The translations under genes and the position numbers were made by a program. The notes below the pieces were generated by a model. It did not search any database. It had not been told where the DNA came from and saw only the letters and a program-made list of their open reading frames with translations. A stretch of DNA of 63,861 nucleotides, filler included, from Platydemus manokwari (lineage: Eukaryota): the NCBI GenBank assembly GCA_037951405.1. It is 5 parts of 5 records of this genome, joined end to end, with 100 filler letters (N's around TTAATTAATTAA, not from the genome) between each part and the next. Parts side by side here need not be neighbours in the genome. Positions count along the whole stretch, not along the records: positions 25,220 to 39,120 come from JBBMOY011583632.1; 4 more parts are not named here. One strand, written 5' to 3'. Shown here piece after piece: positions 25,220 to 39,120 of the stretch. Within the stretch, counting starts at the first letter, position 1. The number at the start of each line of letters is the position of its first letter.

Positions 25220-25489
25220 TTTAATTTTATAAAAAATTAAATTAAGGTAAAATTGAAAATATTTGTTTAAATATTTGGATTTAAAATAGAATTGATCGTG
25301 TCTTGACTTTTTTGGTTTGATTTTAGTTTGTGTTTTTTAAAATTGTATGAGCGGCTAACACATACTATTTATGTCATTCATACTATTCGGATGATATTTA
25401 GATCTTTCATGTAGCTCTTCATTAGATTTACAAATTTCTTTATTTCAAATCCGACAAAAATATCGTGAAAAATATTCGACAAAAATTAT

Positions 25490-26255
25490 ATTGAAGATTT
25501 TATCCGAGTATTCCAACATAAAATGGATTTGATGGCTATTTCAGAATATCAAGAGTTATCTGAAGATTTAATCAGAGAATTCCAAGATAAAGTGAATTGT
25601 AAATAGGTTTCACAACGTTAAATTAAATCAAATATTATTTTTCTTACACAATTTTTAAATCTAAAAATGGCTTTTGTATAAAAAGAAATAAAATAATAAT
25701 TAAAGATCACCTAAGCATCCCTTAATCTTTTAGAATGTTAATTGTAGGAAGTTCCGGTTGTGGTAAAACTCAATTACTTTTTAAAATGTTGTGATAATTT
25801 AATAATATTTTCAAAAACTGTTTATCAAATTTCAATAATATCAAATTTTATATCATGGATTTACAAATGTTTTATCAAAAGAACGTATTATAAAATATTT
25901 GAAAAGCAGGTTGAATTTCATAAAGATTTAACTATAGGAGAAATTTGTGAACTTTACGAAGCAATGTTGTCACCTACGGAAATAGGTGCTATATCAATAA
26001 CCATGACTCCCAAATTTAATGACATTATAAATCCATCAGATCACATTGGGTTTCAATAAGTAAACACCATAAGATTTATTTTTATCCTTTTGAAACTTTA
26101 CCAACTAAAGATGTTTATAATTTCTTTGAAGACGATTTTGTTTATAATAATTTTCAAATACAAATTATGTGGACAATTATCTATGTATGTTTTATATTGT
26201 CTAGGTAACGGGTTAAAATTTGATTATATCATTGATAATATGAAGATTGAAATCG
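25490..26255 (+). mobile_element. Degenerate Maverick/Polinton (adintovirus-like) relic: Trp-repeat-like fragment, packaging ATPase, adenain-type protease
   Basis: ISEYQELSEDLIREFQDKVN; FRMLIVGSSGCGKTQLLFKML (Walker A 25747-25770) followed by NLIIFSKTVYQ; KIYFYPFETLPTKDV..YNNFQIQ..CGQLSMYVLY (CG at 26168). Stops and frameshifts throughout. Confidence 0.7.
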
Positions 26256-26471
26256 ATTAGGTAGGCAATCGGTGATAGCATTTTTCCCTTCACCAGAATT
26301 TAAATTGAGAATTTTAAAATAACCATAGTTCACAAATTTGATAATAGTTCAATAAATAATATGCATAAAACACTTGTTTATGAATAGCAGCAAGTCATTC
26401 TTTTCCCTCGATTTCTTTTTTGATGTCTTAAATTTTCTGAGTGATATTTTTTGCTTGATGCACTGACATCT

Positions 26472-26880
26472 TTAATTTATTTTTATATCCTCAATTGTGT
26501 TTTGAGGTAAAAACTTCATTAATGACGGTTTGGCCAATTTATGCCTGCGAGTATTGTCAATTATTTTCTCGATTTTTTCGAAGTATTGATTGCTATTTTC
26601 TTCCTTTCCTTTCCGGTATCTTAAAACTGTATCAATATCTGCAGCAAGATTAATTTTAGGTTCGCACGATTTTCTAAGGCTCTCTTCAAAACTTCTTTCT
26701 TTGGTGACCTCATGTGTTGGTAGCAATTTTATCCCGAGAAAAGCCCTCACCAGTGTTTCTTCGAATTATTTTGGCTGTTGAGTCAACTCAAAGAATCTTT
26801 TCGTTTCTGTGATGAATTTCTCCAAATAAACTTCTGCCTTTAATTGCTCTGGAGGTTTGATAAAATTTTGAATGTTGGCC
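26472..26880 (-). mobile_element. Possible LTR-retrotransposon gag relic
   Basis: IKPPEQLK..EKFITETKRFFELT..YRKGKEENSNQYFEKIEKI has a gag-like pattern; one internal stop. Confidence 0.35.
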
Positions 26881-27209
26881 ACTATGTAAGAAATAAGTCC
26901 ATTTATACGGAATGATTTATTTAATACAAATACAATGTTGTATACATCGTCTTATTACTGAAATTTTGGGAATTACTTTTCCAAAGAATAAAAAATGATT
27001 CAAATGAAATACGCTGTTTATTTTAGATATAGGAATGTTCATGGTGTAATTACATGACCTTTAAAACATTGTCCTTAATGGAAACAATTAATATTTGGAA
27101 TGTATGTTTGGTGATGAAGAAAAAATTGTTATAAAATATTTTTATATATTATATATTTATGTAAAAAAAACTATATTAAACTCATATTAACGATGATGGT
27201 GTTGGGATT

Positions 27210-27640
27210 TGCTTCTGAACAACTGAATAATCACTGACTCCAAAATTCCAAAGCTATTGACTTTATTTCGAACTTGCGTACTGATCACTACGACTTATAA
27301 AAATACATTAATACAATCAAACTAATGCTCGTATTACTTAAAAATATGTCCAAAACCTGGCTTTCAATTGGCAGTTAACTATTTTTACATCGATATTCAT
27401 GCTCAAGATCTGTGTGTAATTTTTGTGTCATGTTGTTTTGAGTTGGATTGATCAGTCCCTGTGTGTGTTGTTGTGCGGTTATGTCCTTTCTCTAATTGTC
27501 GTATACTATATAACTCCAATTTGATTGGTTGGTTACTTTGCTTGTATGGTTGTGTGAGCATGAAAATATTTACAGGAGTAAAACGAGGTTACCAAGGTGC
27601 AAATACTTTTTTCTTTTACAGAATTTTATCTCACAAAAAC
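27210..27640 (+). repeat. Dispersed ~500-bp repeat family, copy 2 (more diverged)
   Basis: Homologous blocks to 15263-15800 and 60335-60782 in the same order and orientation. Confidence 0.75.
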
Positions 27641-30600
27641 AAATTAAACTGTTGTTTAAAAACTTTGTGGTTCTCAAATGTCTTTCTAAAATTTTTAGAA
27701 GTTTTTGAAGTCTTCAGCTCTCAACTTTACCTTATCTATTTTGATGTTAGATTTGATCACATATATATTTAATATATTTCGAAATATTTTTCAAAAATAT
27801 TAGTATACAAATTTTATCACTGCATTTATCTTAATATTATATTCAAGATGTACGGAAAATCCAGTTGATGATCGCTGATTGATAATTACTGAAAAATTAA
27901 AAATTGCTAAAATTATTTCAAAAATTATTTTCTTTTCATTTTTTAAGGATTGTGACATACATTGAAATCATTATTAAAATTTATTAAGCAAATCGTTTTG
28001 CATAACACAATTTAACGTTATGGGTTTTAGTGGTTTAATTTTCATTATTTTATTTCTTGTGCCCTTGCATATTTATTCGATATGATGAATGAAAATACAT
28101 AATTTTACTAAATAAGAAATTTTAATATAAAATAATTGAAACATTTTTGCACTTCAGTTAGAATAGCAATCAAAATAATTAACTTTTAATTTATTTGTTA
28201 GTTGATTCATTATATCTCACAAAATCATTCACAACCGAAACCATCGGTTTTTTAAACAGCAAGGTATGAAACAGCGATAATTTATTATTTCATATCGATA
28301 ATGGATAAATTTCTTCATAAAAAAGAAACAGCAGAAATAGGTAAGCTTAAAGAATTGATTGCTTTGATTTCAGAATTTACAAATCTTGACATAGCTTCAT
28401 TTATAGAATTTTTAAATATCGAAAATGATAAAAAATATTTTTATAAATTGTATTAGACTTAATGCAATACCTTCAGAGATCTAAGAATTATCATCAATTT
28501 TTCTAATATTTTTGTTGAATCAATTTTAATGTGAAATTAATTTTATAGCCTGTTTTTCTCAGATGGTTTGATTGATTGTCATAGTCCTGCTTTCACAAAT
28601 GGTTTGTGCAACTTTTTGTTATTTTTCATGCAGAGAAAGTTTGATTAATTTTTTCGCTTTAACTAAACCTTTCATTCAGAAACAGTAGTAGTATATTTTG
28701 TTAATTGCAATTGAATATAATTATCGTGATGTGATATCAGATATACGAAAAAAAATTAAGTTGGAAAGCTTTAATTCACAGTCATTCCAATATTTCATAT
28801 TTATATTATCTCTGCTAAATCAGTACGATTGGTGAAAATTTAATAGTTTTACGCTATTGTTTGCTTGAAATCACTTAAAATATCTGTACTATGTGGATGA
28901 TTTTGGCTCAGAAATAATATTATAAGGCGATTTTAAGGAAATTGTTCATGTATGTTATGTAGGATCCAGAATTAAATAAAATACCTGTATGTAAAAGATA
29001 ATAATTTTCTATAATTATTATTTGATATAGAATAAATTTCACTTTTATCAAATAATTGTTATAAATTCATGCGAAAGTTCAGTATGTGATCAAAAACTAA
29101 GTAAAGATAAAATTTATTTACATATTTATTTTAATTATAATTCGTTAGAATGTTGTGATTTCTTATAGCTAATTTTAGATCTCAATTCATTTGAATTTTC
29201 TCATGTTAGCAGTATCAAACTACGATGTTAGTCTGGTCAACTTTCTGTTTAAGTAAATAAATTTTTACTCGATCATAAGCCTAAATTGTTACAGTTAATT
29301 ATGACAAACTAGATTTTTGAATTGCTTCTCTTTAATAAAAGATTAAAAACATGTTAATAATAAATATTTTTCTCACCGAATATTGTCAATTTTGATACAC
29401 AATACATCGTAATTCTGGTACAAAAGGGACGATCTTATTGTTGAAATCAGATTTGAAGTGAATATTTGATGGACTGATGAAAGGGGATTGGTAAAAGATT
29501 CATTGAAAACCAAGTATGGATAAGTTATTGTCAATTGATATTGACGCTTAGAATAATAAACATTATTTGATTTGGAGTTATAATATTGCAAGGTCCGTGA
29601 GTGGTTGAATTCTGAATTATTGGTTTGCGGTGTCAAAATGTCATGAAGAGTAACAACTGCGACCTCTGAAACAAAAAGATACATATACTTAAAGAAATAT
29701 TATCTTGAAAATGTTGGATATTACCTTCGACTACCAATAATAGCAAAAGTAGAATGAATGATCTACTTATCATAAGATTCTTGTGACAATTATGATCCTA
29801 ACAGGCTGGTATGATGCGGTGAGAAAAGTTGATGATAAAGGCTAATAAGAATAGTCGGTTAATCGGGATCTCTTACAAAATTCCAATATTAAAATGGAAA
29901 AAAAGTCTTAAATATACAAAAATTCAGGAACTGGTTAATAAACGGACCATTCGGTATTTTTATACATGATTGTGTGCGACTGAACATTTCGTTAAAATAT
30001 GATAGTGTGTACACTACCTTTATTTGTCAACTAAGGTATTGCAGCACAATGATATTTACAATAACCGAAGAAGATAAATTTCTCTTCATATTGGTCTGTA
30101 TAATTTATTGTATGATTCCAAAAATTATTATTTTCTAACGTTAAATAATCGAAGATTTATTTCTCATGCTTTAAATTAATCAGTTATTAATAATTGTTAA
30201 TACTTAACATCATTAATTTTATTATTGTGTTATAATTATTAAAGTTATAGCATTTAATTTCACTACCACAATTAATTTTTCCTCTATCTTATATATGGGT
30301 TACTAAAAATAGTTTTATGTAAATGTTAACAGTTTTCTTTGGTTTGAAAGCTCAAGTGAAATTTACTTTATTTGCTGTCACTTTTTATCCAATGTGTATA
30401 GACATTTAGATCTTATTCATAATTGAATTTACACACAATGGGTAATTTGCTTTTGGTCGACGATTGTTTTATTAATTTAACTTTTTTATCAAACCAAAGT
30501 GCAATTGATTAAAATCTTATGTATTGCTGATTTTAATTATTGTTTTGCTGATTCTAAAGAGGAAATTTCTACATTTTAATTTCAAATACATCGAATATTG

Positions 30601-33600
30601 TTTTTACGACTCAATTAAAGGTTTCAAGAAAAATTGTAACCTCGTTCTAATTGAAAAATTAAGTCATCGATATCTAAAATGATGTTATATTATAACCTCA
30701 TATTATAAATATCTAATTAAGCCATAATAAAATTAAAATTTACTTTCAATTAATAATTTGTATTATTTGATCCATCTTTATATATTTTAGTTTTATTATT
30801 TTAAAATTCTTTTAAAACTGTACAACCAAAATTTAAAACTATAAACGAAAAAAAATCGTCCACAAACATAGCTCATTGATTCAGTGTTGTATCAAATTTT
30901 AGAATAAGTATTAAAAAATTAAATATCAATTAAAGTTTTAATCAATTACAGTTATCAAGCTTATTAATTTAAGTTTGTTGTGTTCACCAAAATAAAGTAT
31001 TTCAAACAAGAACAAATTTTTATCAAATTCAATCAAATCGGTTTTCATTTAAATAAATACAATACGAACTGCCACTCTATTGGTTACACTTAACGAATTA
31101 CGTGACAATGTAATCGTGAAATAACGAAAATTATCCACATGGCAATTTTTACGGATTAGGTGAATTATTTTATTGAACTTTAATTACACAAAAAGTCCAT
31201 TTTCGCGGAGGAGTATTTTCAGTTAAATTATCTCGTTTATTGTTTATTGGAACAGTGTTGTATAGCTTTGAATGTGTTGTTAAAATGAATTACAATTCAA
31301 TTTACAACCCAGTCTAATTTCATTCACAATTATATTCACGTAAGTGACTCATGCAGTTTGATACGATTAAAATAGCCGCAAATATACATTGTGAATGGGC
31401 TTGCAAATTTTATTATTGTGATTCTATTTTGAATGAAATTCATATGGAAGGGCTTATTATTTTACAAGCTTTGAATTAATATTTTATTTAAAATCATTAC
31501 AATTGATTGAATTGTTAATTATAATTACCCTCAACCGCTTGTAATCTGAATAACATAACCCTATTAAATCAATTATGAAATCAGAACATTTTAATTCACT
31601 CATTTTTGGAAGGAGACACCTACTGGTTGATGTTACGATATTTATTATCAGGTATTTCAGTTGACAATAAAAATTAGTCATTACTTGTTTCTTTATTTTA
31701 ATTTCGAATTGTATTTGTTGATGAAAAGGTGTGAAATTAATATTTTAGTAAAACTGGATTGAATAATTTTAGTTTAATGAATAAATGCAACAATAATTGA
31801 CTAATATTGTATAATTTTACGTATAATATTCGACAATTAATGTTGTTTGGTAGAAACGATTTATCACCATATGAAATTTCTAAAGTTAGTGCAATGTTTG
31901 TTTTAATTTCTTGTCAATTTTTAAACCAATTTTTATTATAATTTCCGAAATGGAAAATCTCATCTTTGAACTTTAATTTACAGAATAATTATGTCATTCT
32001 ATTTAGTTTCAGTTAAGGAAGTGTGGAATTAATTTCAATGTTTTACTAGAAGTATCCGTAAAAATCATTAAACTTTGAACTCCATAAATTTTTAATTATA
32101 AAAATATTTCAGTAAGGACCAACTGATATTTTTAAAGATTTATGAGTCGGATTGTGGAGTTGTATTTTCTTAATGGACCCATATACTTGGTCAGAAAGTC
32201 AAAATCGAATTGATTTTCTCTCCAACTCACCATCTTTTTTAAGAACATATTCTATAATACCAAAGAAAATATTACAGGAATTGTATGAATTTCTTTTGGA
32301 ATTTTATAATTTGTTTGAGAATATATTTGATAGGTTTTTTTAATTTAATTTTAAACAACTTAAAGAAATCTTGACATGGTATTAAGTAGAAATATTTAGT
32401 TTTTTAATCTCAATGAAATATAATTGATCTGAACAGTTAGCACTTATCCTTTAATATTTATAGAATTAGAGTAGCCTTGACAACAATGATCACTAACAAA
32501 ATAATGCTTAAATATTTGTTTTGTTATTCTGCGAATAAATACTACGAATTTTTGGATTACATACAAACGTGACATTTGATTCAAATATATCAATCACTCC
32601 AACAATGGTTGACCTTGGCGAGAAGTTCGTTTTTGTGACAAATTTTTACGAATCCTTATTAAACAATACTAATTTATTTTATAATAACTTTTAAGTACAT
32701 AATATAAAATTTACGAATTTATTACAACATATTATTATAAACAAAAAATTAAAATCCATGCCAACTAAGATAAACAGAGTTCAATAAATTTCCAGGCTAC
32801 GTTAGTGAAATTAAATTATTTTATAATTTTGGAGAACTTTGGTACACCAGGTATTTACAATAAACTATTTGATCCATTTTTTAAAATTATCAAGAATAAC
32901 TTGTACTTTCAAAGAAAAGCATATCTATGCCAATTAAATGTATAAATTTAACTACAAACCATATTATAATAAAGATATAGTTATTGATTTTAAACAAAAA
33001 TTAATCGACACAGATTCCACATTTTAATTAAATATATGGGTAATTATTTTCACATGATATGTTGATGTTAAATAATCATTTCTTTTACCTTCGTTACACT
33101 TCATTTCCTTCATATGGCTGTTAAATGTTTTAAAATGTTTTTACATCATGTAATGTTTAATTAGAACATGTTGTCAAGCTATATTTCGAATATGATAATT
33201 TATTCGAAATTAAAAGATATCTTTCATTTCATTTTATATTATATAAAACTTTTATCCATTAGAATTCTTATAAATTATTCTTCCCGACATAACGGAATAA
33301 TTGAAGAGCATTTAACATTCTAACAAGATTCAATGCCAGATTATTAAAACAAAAAATTTTGTTTGAATTATTATCGATGTATTTTTTTCCATTGGTACAA
33401 AGCACAAAAGGTTTTGGTAATAAAATTCACCGGAAAGTGTCTAATGTTCACAAAAATATTTCTTTTACAAAAATATCACTTTACAATAAGGTTAATGTAG
33501 ATCGAATTTGACATTTTAAATACCAAAATTTCTTAACAATTGGAAACGTTTTTTCGACTACAATTGTCTGAAATTTTAAGACGTGACAAAATATTAAAGT

Positions 33601-33954
33601 AAATAACCACTTACAATTCACTGATCACTACTAACGACTTAATAAATGATGACAGGACCTATTACGGTTATTGACATGTCACCATGTCCCAAATATCAAG
33701 TAACGTATACCACCATAGATCTATGCGAAATAAATCGCCTAATATAAAATGGTAGGCATACAAAGTCCATTTAAACATTAATCTCTACATCAATGTATAT
33801 ACGTCTCGAAACCGATATTCACAAATACGTCACACATGGACACTTTTTCCACAAATAATTTTACAGATATTTTTTTTTTAATATCGATTTGGATTTTAGT
33901 TTTTCGAGCAAATAAAAAAATCAAGACAAAACTTTATGCTTTACAAAACACAAA

Positions 33955-35252
33955 TCATTCCAAGATCTCGACGACATTGGATGAATCTGTCGACAGATCG
34001 CTATTCATCAACGGCATCCAAATACTGGACTGAATCTGACCGACAGCGATTTGGGCAAATTGTGGATTGCATTCCAATGCACCGATATTCAACGGTGGCG
34101 TGCTACCGGATCGACCGGGATTATTGAAGCCTCCTGCCGATGTCCCACCTTCCGATGACTGCAACAGAGCAACCCTTTGAGCATTCGACACTCGCCAAAC
34201 ATACAGACGGCCTTCTGGACTACCAGCCATTAAATAGCGACTGTCGGGAGTAAAACAAGCATTGATATCGATTTGGGAAGGATTTGTCCCAAGAATCTAT
34301 AACAGTGATTAATAATATTCCCCAACAGAACGATATTCCTGAGTAACTACTTGTAATTGGTGAAGAGATCGTCCGGTAAATGAATCCAAAAGTGCGATTT
34401 GCGTACCCATCCCGCTTAATAATAACATTTTCCCATCTGGCGAGAACCTTAACGACGTAACATCGACTCGAGTATTTTCATGATGTAAAGCTGGCAATGA
34501 GAATGTTAGAAATGGACCTTGTTCAAAAGTTCGTAAATCGTAAAGTTTACACGTTTCTGAATTGATGCAAACACAGAAAATCAAACCCTCTGGATCGATG
34601 GCAGCTAACCCTTTATTCGGTAGTTGCATCAAGGCCTAGAACATTAATAAAAAAACCTATTGAGAGAAATAAATGAAAATTAACTTGACAATTTGAAGTG
34701 CGCAAATCCCACAACCTAATCGTTTTGTCCAGGGAACCAGAAAGAAATGTATCATTCGTAGGAGACATAGACAAACTAATGACTCTACAATTTTTAATAA
34801 AATTCAATTACTTTTAATAATTCCTAACTTTTTAGTATGACCTGGGTAAACTCGAATATATTTATTATCATGCAATGATAAATATCTTAAATTATCTGAA
34901 ATAGATTACAAATACAGCATTCCATGTTTAAAAAGTTTAAAAATTAATAACCATCGATTTTGTTAGACGCATGGATAACTGCTGTTGAACAGTGTGTAAA
35001 TTTAATCATTTCTATCCCATATTTCTTACTATAAATAGTTTGTAAGTGTCTACAAGTATTTAAAATTTTTATATTTTTGCAATTACCTTACTTTCCATTT
35101 ATTACATCGTAAACATTAATAGAATCATCATGACTGGATGAAATTAATTTTTCACCATTAGATGTAAAATTTAGAGCATTAACTTTGTCTGAATTGTCTT
35201 TAAAGCATTTAAAACACTCATAACTTCTCAAATTATCATCATTTAATTTCAT
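33955..35252 (-). CDS. WDR82: WD repeat-containing protein 82 (Swd2 family), 6 exons
   Basis: Spliced: [114 protein letters not shown]; matches WDR82 throughout. Confidence 0.95.
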
Positions 35253-35347
35253 CGCAAATCTTATGAATATTAAAACAATAAGTTAAATAAATTATAATTA
35301 AGTTTTATTTTATATAACATAATATATGCACAAAGTCATTTGAACAA

Positions 35348-38051
35348 TTATTCTTTTCTTGGATCCACTGAAGATGAAGGCGGCAAATTAGCTGGATATA
35401 ATTCTGTTATATTATCAACTGCTAATAGTTCGCCATCAAACCGTTTTCTTTTGGGCGAAAGCACATTCTCAGCAGCCAAAGAAAGCACCTCTCGCAAAGT
35501 TAAAGTACCTAATTATAAATAAATTCATTTTCATCAACATTTTTAAATAACCTTGTTCTGGTCGCCGCTGTTGCTTTCGAGATGAAAAATTATTTTTACT
35601 GTTATTAGTACTTATTTTATTTATACTTGAATTGGTATTTGGAAAATTATTGTCCCTGAAAATTATTATTTAATGTCTAAACATGTTCCCACTTACTGTG
35701 ACTGTGTAATGGACTTCAGTTTTGCTCCAGAATCCTTAAGCAAACGCTCCAATTTTGGTAAGCCCACATGAACATTACCATTATGTCCCTCATCGCCAGA
35801 TAATAATGTTCCGATATCAACAACACCCTTTAAACTGCTACCAAATACTTCAAAGGAATCTAACACCTCTTTGTGAGCTGGCGATCTATCTTGATACAAC
35901 CAGAGAAGAAGTTCCAATTCTGTTTTAAAAGCTTTTGTATCTTGTGTGCTTTATTTGTGTAATAATAATAATAATAATAATAATAATATAAGCTGGTAAT
36001 ATTTACCCTGTTTTTTTCGCAGTTTTTTCAGCATTGCTCTGATCGAATATCATTTGTTGAAGAAACCCAATACAGTTGCTCTTCTCTGAAAAATCAAGAT
36101 GCTTTTTAGCCAAAATCTCAGCCACTTTTGGCATCAAAGGCTACCAAATGATTGAATCAATGAACGTTTGTTATTCGACAATGATTTACCTTATTAAAAA
36201 TCAAAGTATCACTGGTAAGTTCGGGCCAATAACGTGTATGTTGTTCAATTTCCCTCAATGCTAACACAGCGACAATCACTGCTTGGTCAGATAATTAACC
36301 GATTTATATTTACCTCTATCCATTGGCAGAAAGGACGATTGCGGAGCAGCCGGAACCAGACGATTATTCAATATGAATTGACTAAAATCCGTTGTTCGGA
36401 GCTTGTTGAGAATCTTTTTGCTTGCCAATTCCGAAATATGGGGTATTTTGGTTTGGGAATCCGAACTGGGAAATATTGGATCTCGATGGGCACACAACGT
36501 ATGGACATGCAATAAACCGCTATGACTTGTTAATAAAAGGAGTTCATATTTCGGTTCCGGTAAACCGGGTGGCGCATGCGGTATGAGTCCATGATCAACT
36601 TCCAACACAACACTGCGGCCTGAACGTAAAATAACATTAATAAATCCCGTTAACAAATACTATTGCCGACCTTCAAGAACAAAATTGGCCAAACAACATG
36701 AAGCCCGATGACAAACATCGGCTGTTGTTATTCTATAAACACTATTCGTGTTATAATATTCTATTAAAAACCATTATTAACAATTATTCTGACATCACTA
36801 TCTAATTAAGCTCTACCGATATCTTGGGTTTGTTTTGGTGTCACCCATCGGATACCAATGCAACTGGAAAATCCACAATAAGGACGATGAGCCATCGTCA
36901 TTAGAGGCAACAATCCTGCTTGGACTATGTGATCTAATGCGGCCCGTGGATGAATTAATTCCACTCCATACATAGCGCTTTGGGTATTGTTTGTGTCTTC
37001 CTTCATGGGGATATTTTGAACTAGAATACACGCTAACTGGTGATGCTGTTCACACAATGCCATTAAGGATCTATGAAGATCTCGATTCGCCATAACTGTT
37101 TGACGGTAAAGCAAATGAGAGCTAGATTGTCCGGGCTAAATGAATAATATATATATTCGAACGGGTTATCATTAATCACTGAAGATGTCGTTAAAATCAA
37201 TTAGAATAGTTAATTATATTTATAAATTACCAATAATAAATGAAATATACCGAAACAAGAACAGGCAAATCATCACCCTGAGTGCCATCTAATATTGGTT
37301 CTACATCAATGAAATACCATTCACTAGCAGACACTTGTTGGCTGTTATTCAAAGTTAATATTTTAATATTAAGCGACATGTATTACCGAGAAGTTCCAAC
37401 AACGTCAGAAGCCAAAGAAGAATTAACATCTTCGATCCAATGGATTACATTCTCACTGAATATTGATTAAGCATTTTGACTAATATTGAAAATTATACCC
37501 CATCTTATATCCTAAAACAATTACTCTACCAGCATTGAGATGATCTTGATCTGGTTTCAGTTCTAGTATAGATTTTACGGAATTAAATCCAGGTAATACA
37601 TCGGGAACTAGGCTAGGTGTAGCATTTTGTGGAGAACCTATTTCAGATAACACTTTCATCCACTATACATTAAATAATTTTAAAAACATTTAAAAGTGCT
37701 ATAATGTTACATTTCGCCATGATTGTTGAGTTTTATCGTTAGTTGATATACATATTCTTTCTTTAGAATCAACCACAACCAGAGCCATCTGACAAATTAA
37801 TTTTATAACGTTTATATACATTAAAAATGAACTTCTCTTTCTGTTCCAAAAATATCATAGACAATCCTTATATATTCTAGAACACTTTCACAAACTGCAC
37901 TCCATAAAGTTTTGCTATACGTTAAAGGATTTGCGGAAAACGATTTTTTCGATTCTAAAGATATGTCAACACCAGATGGGATTAACATGTCACTTGTGTG
38001 AACAAGTACAAATATTGTTTTTTGGTTTAAAAGCTCAGAATGTTTTGTCAT
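35348..38051 (-). CDS. INTS13: Integrator complex subunit 13 (asunder), multi-exon
   Basis: KTIFVLVH..SKTLWSAVCESVLEYIRIVYDIF, NAGRVIV, NIPMKED..YGVELIHP, YRITTADV..CLANFVLEGRSVVLE, EQHTRYWP..TLIFN and C-terminal RFDGEL..TELY all align with asunder/INTS13; all introns GT-AG; stop TAA at 35350-35348. Confidence 0.9.
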
Positions 38052-39120
38052 TAATAATATAAAAAACTATAAATTATTTCTGAATAATATTTAAGAAATT
38101 TGAAAATTATAAAATTTTATTGGATATATTAAAACAAATGACCTCAAAACTGTTTATTGATTTATACATTTATATATATTGGATACAGACACTTAAAGCG
38201 TATGGGTATATACTACTAAAATAAAAGATTCATAGATTATTTTTGGGGAACACGCAAATAGCCAGGTCATTATTATAAGTTTACAATAGTCATTGTTAAG
38301 TATTCTTTGATTATTTCTTTGAATTATTTGAAATAATATTACATGTTATGGTCACTCGGCTCCAACTTAACTAATAAGTGAGTACATAAATTCTCTTTTT
38401 AATTGAAAAGAAAAACTTGTTATATGAAAATACTTTATTTATCTATGGCACATGTGTGCTTGCATTACAATTTATTCAATTTTCAATGAACTACCTAGCT
38501 TTTACAAAGCCTGCGAGTAAAGTTTATAAAACTAGTAACTAATTTTCCTATTATAAAATTACCATCATTTACTGTAAGTTTAAACATATATGTTTTAACA
38601 ATTTGATTGGCAACTTACTTGTTTGATACTAAAAAATTATTTAATATACAATAACGATTTACTCAAAGCTTGTATTTAACAAGTGAGTTAATCAATTAAC
38701 ATCATTACACAATTTCCCTTAAAACAAACACAATAGTTGTATAATTATTTATTCAGTCGAAATAACAAATACGACACTCATTTTAAATGAGACTATTCGA
38801 TTCACAAAAAATGAATTAATTATCTTTCAGGTTTTAATTATTAAGTTGTAGATGTTGAAATCCCTACAATTCTCAGAAAAGTATTTATGGTTAATAAACT
38901 CCACATAGAAGTACAACCTTATAAAATGAACCTTTTTCAAGTAAATATGTAATATGCATATAAATAATTATATATGATATTAACACTTAGGGTGTTTTAT
39001 GTTTCCTCTAAATCAAAAGGTTTCGATTTTTCCTTGTTAGGTCTGTGATATTAACACTAAGTTCTTCCAATTCATAACTTAGTTCTTCGTTACAAATTTT
39101 CTCTAGTGACTTTAATTAAT

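Follow-up and report, generated by a model that had tools for sequence, protein, structure and literature searches.

A closely spaced, same-strand INTS13 and WDR82/Swd2-like gene pair is a positional operon candidate in the flatworm Platydemus manokwari

In this study, we analysed a window of 63,861 nt (filler included) from the Platydemus manokwari assembly GCA_037951405.1 and found, in the part that spans positions 25,220 to 39,120 (JBBMOY011583632.1), a genuine head-to-tail pair of genes on the same strand, INTS13 followed by a WDR82/Swd2-like gene. Both lie on the minus strand with 95 nt between them, and by the positional definition in use for flatworms they are an operon candidate. Taxon and position together give about an even chance that the pair is a dicistron resolved by spliced-leader (SL) trans-splicing. 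The spacer sequence itself fails to separate the operon from the reading in which the downstream gene has a promoter of its own. The initial annotation had placed the INTS13 stop and the WDR82 start codon 95 nt apart, and direct reading of the window reproduced these coordinates, with the INTS13 stop TAA at 35350-35348 and the WDR82-like ATG at 35252-35250 of the minus strand. The layout of the locus is as follows.

35348 to 38051, minus strand: coding part of INTS13/Asunder; 13 exons, 685 aa, introns of 41-58 nt and one of 115 nt
35348 to 35508, minus strand: last INTS13 exon, ending in the TAA stop; its C-terminal F-x-G...LY block aligns with homologues
35253 to 35347, minus strand: intercistronic spacer; 95 nt, GC 16.8%, one AG and four GT
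33955 to 35252, minus strand: coding part of the WDR82/Swd2-like WD40 gene; 6 exons, 350 aa, introns of 42-56 nt

The upstream gene had been called INTS13 from the start, and this identification was borne out. Its 13-exon splice model is free of internal stops, and exons 1, 6 and 8 match the Pfam family PF10221 (Mat89Bb) at colinear profile positions (3-75, 235-322 and 353-432) with scores of 44.1, 47.9 and 24.6 bits against a curated cut-off of 25. Database, family, structure and Atlas searches were all run per exon for both genes, and the joined models were used locally only, for translation, for tblastn against retrieved loci and for MAFFT alignment with retrieved proteins. Over its full length, the INTS13 model can be aligned with INTS13 proteins from flatworms and from elsewhere at 24-32% identity, and the best database matches of the searched INTS13 exon carry the names INTS13, asunder or Mat89Bb. 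Since the last exon aligns with the C-terminus of these homologues, and since full-length homologues likewise stop about 10 residues past the conserved F-x-G...LY block, we regard the stop codon that bounds the spacer as authentic.

INTS13 also places the locus, on sequence comparison, almost certainly in a platyhelminth or a very close ally. An exhaustive phmmer search with the best-conserved INTS13 exon returned one 95%-identical fragment and then flatworms only, at 36-50% identity (Protopolystoma, Cichlidogyrus, Schistosoma japonicum, Taenia, Mesocestoides, Schistocephalus and Hymenolepis), before a tier of 31-36% that comprised a cephalopod, bivalves, an annelid, a barnacle and an insect. 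By pairwise BLASTP, the ten best named INTS13 matches were all Platyhelminthes (33-43%), followed by molluscs, an annelid and arthropods (33-36%). In a maximum-likelihood tree built on about 100 aa of INTS13, from a sample without any free-living flatworm or gastrotrich, this locus fell inside the flatworm clade with support of 100/100. A nematode or rotifer origin, suggested by the 41-58 nt introns and the AT-rich DNA, is rejected by the ranking of the homologues and by this tree.

The downstream gene is likely a WDR82/Swd2 orthologue, as judged from exon-by-exon comparison. Its splice model is free of internal stops, its exons match WD40 Pfam families, and its ATG is the first in-frame ATG past an upstream in-frame stop. 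When single WD40 exons are compared with solved structures, generic repeat matches, for example to WDR5 and G-beta, dominate the results and are no proof of orthology. The non-repeat exon 3, in turn, matches one WD40 chain only among the solved structures, residues 89-112 of S. pombe C824.04/Swd22, a WDR82/Swd2 homologue, and exon 5 matches residues 147-246 of the same chain, colinear with exon 3. Among the Atlas clusters matched by this gene, one with the name 'WD repeat-containing protein 82 family' came only at rank 17. In addition, the N-terminus (MKL...) and a 12-residue motif are probably shared with human WDR82. The initial annotation had named the gene WDR82 outright; its nature as a WD40 protein colinear with Swd22 stands, while orthology with WDR82/Swd2 is better described as likely. 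A drop in GC content at this gene's 5' end had been pointed out as well, and it appears here as a steep rise from the 5' to the 3' exon (0.24, 0.31, 0.22, 0.39, 0.40 and 0.48).

The junction between the two genes is contiguous DNA and no assembly join, because an independent 2,900-nt short-read contig from the sole public run found to contain this DNA (run X1, a non-RNA run and probably the source sample) spans 33900-35950 with zero differences from the window. The contigs of this run break solely at an (ATT)n/(TAT)n microsatellite at 35951-35997, within INTS13 intron 10. GC content at this locus is about 23-25% in non-coding DNA, 38% in exons and 23% in introns. No recognisable exons were seen over at least 1 kb upstream of INTS13, and the roughly 8.7 kb downstream of the WDR82-like gene (25220-33900) contained no recognisable protein-coding exon, its nine ORF segments being without a Pfam match. 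Rfam and tRNA scans of the 13.9-kb piece gave no match and no SL RNA. The 95-nt gap stands out for this reason, since the surroundings are gene-poor and not uniformly compact. Raised GC at about 26.4-27.6 kb and again at 29.4-30.0 kb may come from decayed mobile elements or from unknown genes with small exons.

The spacer holds the motifs that the initial annotation had listed, AATAAA, a U-rich tract and an AG 7 nt before the ATG, at the coordinates given here, together with a TATA-like sequence.

35308 to 35316, minus strand: TATA-box-like TATATAAAA, overlapping AATAAA, about 60 nt upstream of the WDR82-like ATG
35304 to 35309, minus strand: AATAAA hexamer that begins 39 nt past the stop, candidate poly(A) signal of INTS13
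35262 to 35291, minus strand: T-rich tract, 60% T, directly upstream of the AG
35260 to 35261, minus strand: the sole AG of the spacer (ttcataAG/atttgcgATG), candidate trans-splice acceptor, 7 nt before the ATG, with A at -3

Donor and acceptor matrices were derived from the 17 cis introns of both genes, and 8.7 kb of local non-coding DNA served as background. Taken singly, the spacer motifs are mostly no more than expected by chance. In 95 nt of local non-coding DNA, chance alone would give AATAAA 0.34 times and TATAWAW 0.24 times. The AATAAA is moreover embedded in TATATAAAATAAAA, which reads equally well as a TATA box at its distance of about 60 nt from the WDR82-like ATG, and this overlap makes a promoter belonging to the WDR82-like gene possible.

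The candidate acceptor is likewise unconvincing by score. With a value of -1.19, it is equalled or bettered by 52% of the 339 background AGs. Leave-one-out scores of the cis acceptors have their median at 5.0, and no more than two of the 17 fall below the candidate. Its main defect is the A at -3, a position occupied by C or T in 16 of the 17 local cis acceptors; the exception is the AAG of INTS13 intron 10. This intron (35949-36006, minus strand, 58 nt) has the non-consensus AAG (cacaaataaAG/C) as its sole frame-preserving acceptor, and the need for it to keep the reading frame suggests that AAG acceptors may be usable in this organism. The context of the candidate AG is more distinctive. It is preceded by an AG-free zone of 91 nt, a length reached by 2.7-3.3% of background AGs, against medians of 38 nt for cis acceptors and 16 nt for background AGs, though the zone is partly explained by the low G content of the spacer. 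The T fraction before the AG is 0.60, compared with 0.35 +/- 0.10 for background AGs and 0.33-0.57 for cis acceptors. Both the AG-free zone and the T-richness would fit a real 3' splice site at this position; under any model, a T-rich tract is equally to be expected here for the INTS13 poly(A) site, whose downstream element it would be.

The absence of a convincing donor in the spacer, noted at the outset, was also found by the matrices: the best GT (35318) reaches 0.9, equal to the background median, and the leave-one-out median of the cis donors is 4.9. A cis intron from GTTATA at 35318 to the AG at 35260 would measure 59 nt, a typical size for this locus, and was rejected because its donor and acceptor both score at the background median.

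Upstream of INTS13 itself lies a further AG.

38080 to 38081, minus strand: strong acceptor-like AG (ttaaatattattcAG/a), at 28 nt upstream from the start codon of INTS13

Its matrix score of 7.95 is above that of almost all cis acceptors and is reached by 0.9% of background AGs, and it follows an AG-free zone of 61 nt. INTS13 may itself be SL trans-spliced or have an intron in its 5' UTR. Closer to the start codon, at 15 nt upstream, is a second acceptor-like site (tttatAG/t) with a score of 4.23.

SL trans-splicing and polycistrons with short spacers are documented in flatworms (PMC3254664, PMC12582326, PMC8629364), where one function of SL trans-splicing is the resolution of polycistrons (PMC3254664). 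The polycistrons of S. mansoni were validated by RT-PCR and have an intergenic distance below 200 bp as their hallmark (PMC3254664). A study of 24 species took same-strand genes at most 300 bp apart as operon candidates, found mostly two-gene units, and reported a median of 99 bp from where the 3' UTR ends to the SL acceptor in S. mansoni (PMC12582326); in Macrostomum, trans-spliced genes are most often separated by close to 100 bp, and operons account for about 15% of genes (PMC8629364). The layout of the INTS13-WDR82 pair is ordinary for such a taxon, because flatworms trans-splice SL and short same-strand gaps are their standard operon candidates. The likeness to SL-trans-spliced units that the initial annotation had drawn is sustained to this extent, by the 95-nt same-strand gap and by the flatworm placement at 100/100.

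On the SL-dicistron reading, a single promoter upstream of INTS13 would give rise to a dicistronic precursor, from which the INTS13 mRNA would be cleaved and polyadenylated past the AATAAA at 35309-35304, while the WDR82 mRNA would receive its capped 5' end through SL trans-splicing at the AG at 35261-35260, leaving a genomic 5' UTR of only 7 nt. Gene boundaries, contiguous DNA, flatworm placement, non-compact surroundings and the splice-site-like context of the AG make this plausible. The score of the candidate acceptor at the median of random AGs, its A at -3 and the TATA-like overlap would count against it, as would the separation of the two genes in three neodermatan genomes and two metagenomic contigs described below and the fact that just 11-47% of flatworm genes are trans-spliced (PMC12582326).

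Compared with described flatworm polycistrons (the UbCRBP-enolase unit of S. mansoni and the operons of Echinococcus, Hymenolepis and Macrostomum lignano), the pair shares the phylum, the number of genes (most units there have two), the common strand, a spacer of about 100 nt with a poly(A) signal, a short intercistronic stretch and an AG just before the downstream ATG, and the lack of a donor upstream of that AG (PMC3254664, PMC12582326, PMC8629364). It differs in that the candidate acceptor is AAG instead of YAG or YTNCAG and in that INTS13 and WDR82 are unlinked in the Neodermata compared. In particular, the candidate acceptor cataAG does not fit the trans-acceptor motif [T/C]TNCAG of Macrostomum (PMC8629364). 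The order of AAUAAA, U-rich stretch and trans-splice site within about 100 nt is also that of the SL2-type operons of C. elegans; unlike these, the distance from hexamer to AG is just 44 nt here, the host is no nematode, and flatworms show no SL2 specialisation, genes inside and outside operons having one SL in common (PMC3254664, PMC12582326). The short gap and a TATA-like motif suitably spaced from the ATG resemble, on the other hand, tightly packed independent genes whose promoter lies over the 3' end of the upstream gene, from which the locus differs by its gene-poor, non-compact surroundings.

This last comparison leads to the main rival, in which the two genes are independent transcription units and the core promoter of the WDR82-like gene lies in the spacer or in the 3' end of INTS13. 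We rate it as a serious though less than even possibility. Here TATATAAAA (35316-35308) would be the TATA box, transcription would start near 35285 and give a 5' UTR of about 30 nt without an upstream ATG, and INTS13 would end at the overlapping AATAAA or further downstream. The position of the motif agrees with this, there being no ATG from about 35317 to the start codon, and so do the random-like score of the putative acceptor, the fact that most flatworm genes are without trans-splicing (PMC12582326) and the lack of conservation of the adjacency in other flatworms. The TATA-like motif is weakened as an argument by its chance expectation in AT-rich DNA, and the gap is not forced by crowding, given the gene-poor surroundings. 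Short same-strand gaps in flatworms are furthermore a distinct class enriched in SL-resolved pairs (PMC12582326, PMC8629364). An independent promoter would also leave the AG-free, T-rich run and the single AG beside the ATG unexplained, barring a downstream element of the poly(A) site. Co-transcription in the absence of SL, either as a dicistronic mRNA translated by reinitiation or internal entry or by cis-splicing that joins a 5' exon of INTS13 to the AG at 35260, has the same strand and the very short spacer in its favour and is unlikely in our estimate. Reinitiation is inefficient after an ORF as long as the 685 codons of INTS13, and the spacer contains two out-of-frame ATGs, at 35339 and 35320. 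As to the cis-splicing variant, flatworm acceptors are often common to cis- and trans-splicing, but those that resolve operons are rarely cis-spliced (PMC12582326), and a junction from the INTS13 exon-12 donor to the AG at 35260 meets a stop after three codons.

Synteny in relatives, which had been proposed as a check on the pair, spoke against a conserved linkage. In S. japonicum INTS13 is followed by a SCAP-like gene on the opposite strand, in Taenia asiatica by a zf-AN1 gene on the opposite strand, and in Cichlidogyrus by an unannotated gene of 189 aa and then a kinase; local tblastn found no WDR82 at any of these three INTS13 loci. Nor was WDR82 found by local tblastn on a 7.9-kb metagenomic INTS13 contig (L006), and a metagenomic contig of eukaryotic origin (L026, 31 kb), which carries a WDR82 orthologue of 46% identity, had no INTS13 within the 20-kb stretch examined around that gene. 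Since the pair is unlinked in the flatworms and contigs compared, the linkage would be lineage-specific at most.

INTS13 is a subunit of Integrator, and WDR82 promotes Pol II termination together with PNUTS-PP1 or Restrictor. From these roles and the operon-like layout, the initial annotation had derived a feedback in which the supply of a termination factor depends on read-through of an upstream poly(A) site. That the WDR82-like gene is expressed solely by read-through of the INTS13 poly(A) site, with its dosage tied to that of an Integrator subunit, would be very improbable, and we give just as slim a chance to a selected circuit in which this requirement for Pol II read-through provides negative feedback. 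The known protein roles and the layout are the arguments for such a circuit, and the evidence from elsewhere runs counter to it. INTS13 and WDR82 are not neighbours in S. japonicum, Taenia asiatica or Cichlidogyrus, nor on contigs L006 and L026. The cistrons of flatworm polycistrons display no functional pattern (PMC3254664), and the make-up of operons shows poor conservation (PMC12582326). With operon pairs numbering in the hundreds in each genome, and with many windows scanned, one thematic match is expected by chance. In our literature search, no paper placed INTS13 and WDR82 in one operon, and the flatworm operons described or found conserved did not include this pair. Most likely it is a coincidence that the two share a role in Pol II termination, and a feedback would matter only if the linkage were conserved in the lineage and the WDR82-like gene were without a promoter of its own.

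If RNA data confirm the SL-resolved dicistron, it would be one more two-gene operon beside the hundreds known in flatworms, notable only since both products act on Pol II termination. The AAG acceptor, if used, would provide a test of the degeneracy tolerated in flatworm trans-splice sites. For annotation, the practical consequence is that INTS13 and the WDR82-like gene are not to be fused into one chimeric model.

Two close relatives were recovered, and the contigs of both end short of the INTS13-WDR82 junction. One, from a Logan run (L004), covers INTS13 exons 1-6 with 94-96% amino acid identity in the conserved exons; the other, from a JGI metagenome (L008), starts at WDR82 exon 5 and is 77-81% identical over exons 5-6; the metagenome scan with exon 5 that retrieved it gave 81-84%. 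For WDR82 exon 1, a word search and a metagenome scan gave no match. In the aligned stretches (L004:1-1139 with window 37964-36808, L008:1-1072 with window 34637-34004), intron positions are common and amino acid identity is 77-96%, with a nucleotide identity of just 70-77% and a GC content of 47-49% in the relatives versus 34-39% in the same stretches of the window. There is thus a strong compositional shift between near relatives.

Some minor features of the two genes were also observed. The last blade of the WDR82-like protein carries a 24-residue Gly/Ser-rich insertion, common to L008. Past the stop of this gene (33560-33955, minus strand), GC stays at about 0.30-0.33 over some 350 nt and no canonical AATAAA occurs, which points to a rather long 3' UTR and a variant poly(A) signal. 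Finally, INTS13 intron 5 (37136-37250, minus strand) is an outlier at 115 nt, the other 16 introns measuring 41-58 nt; it contains an internal cttcAG and could conceal an old insertion or an alternative exon of small size.
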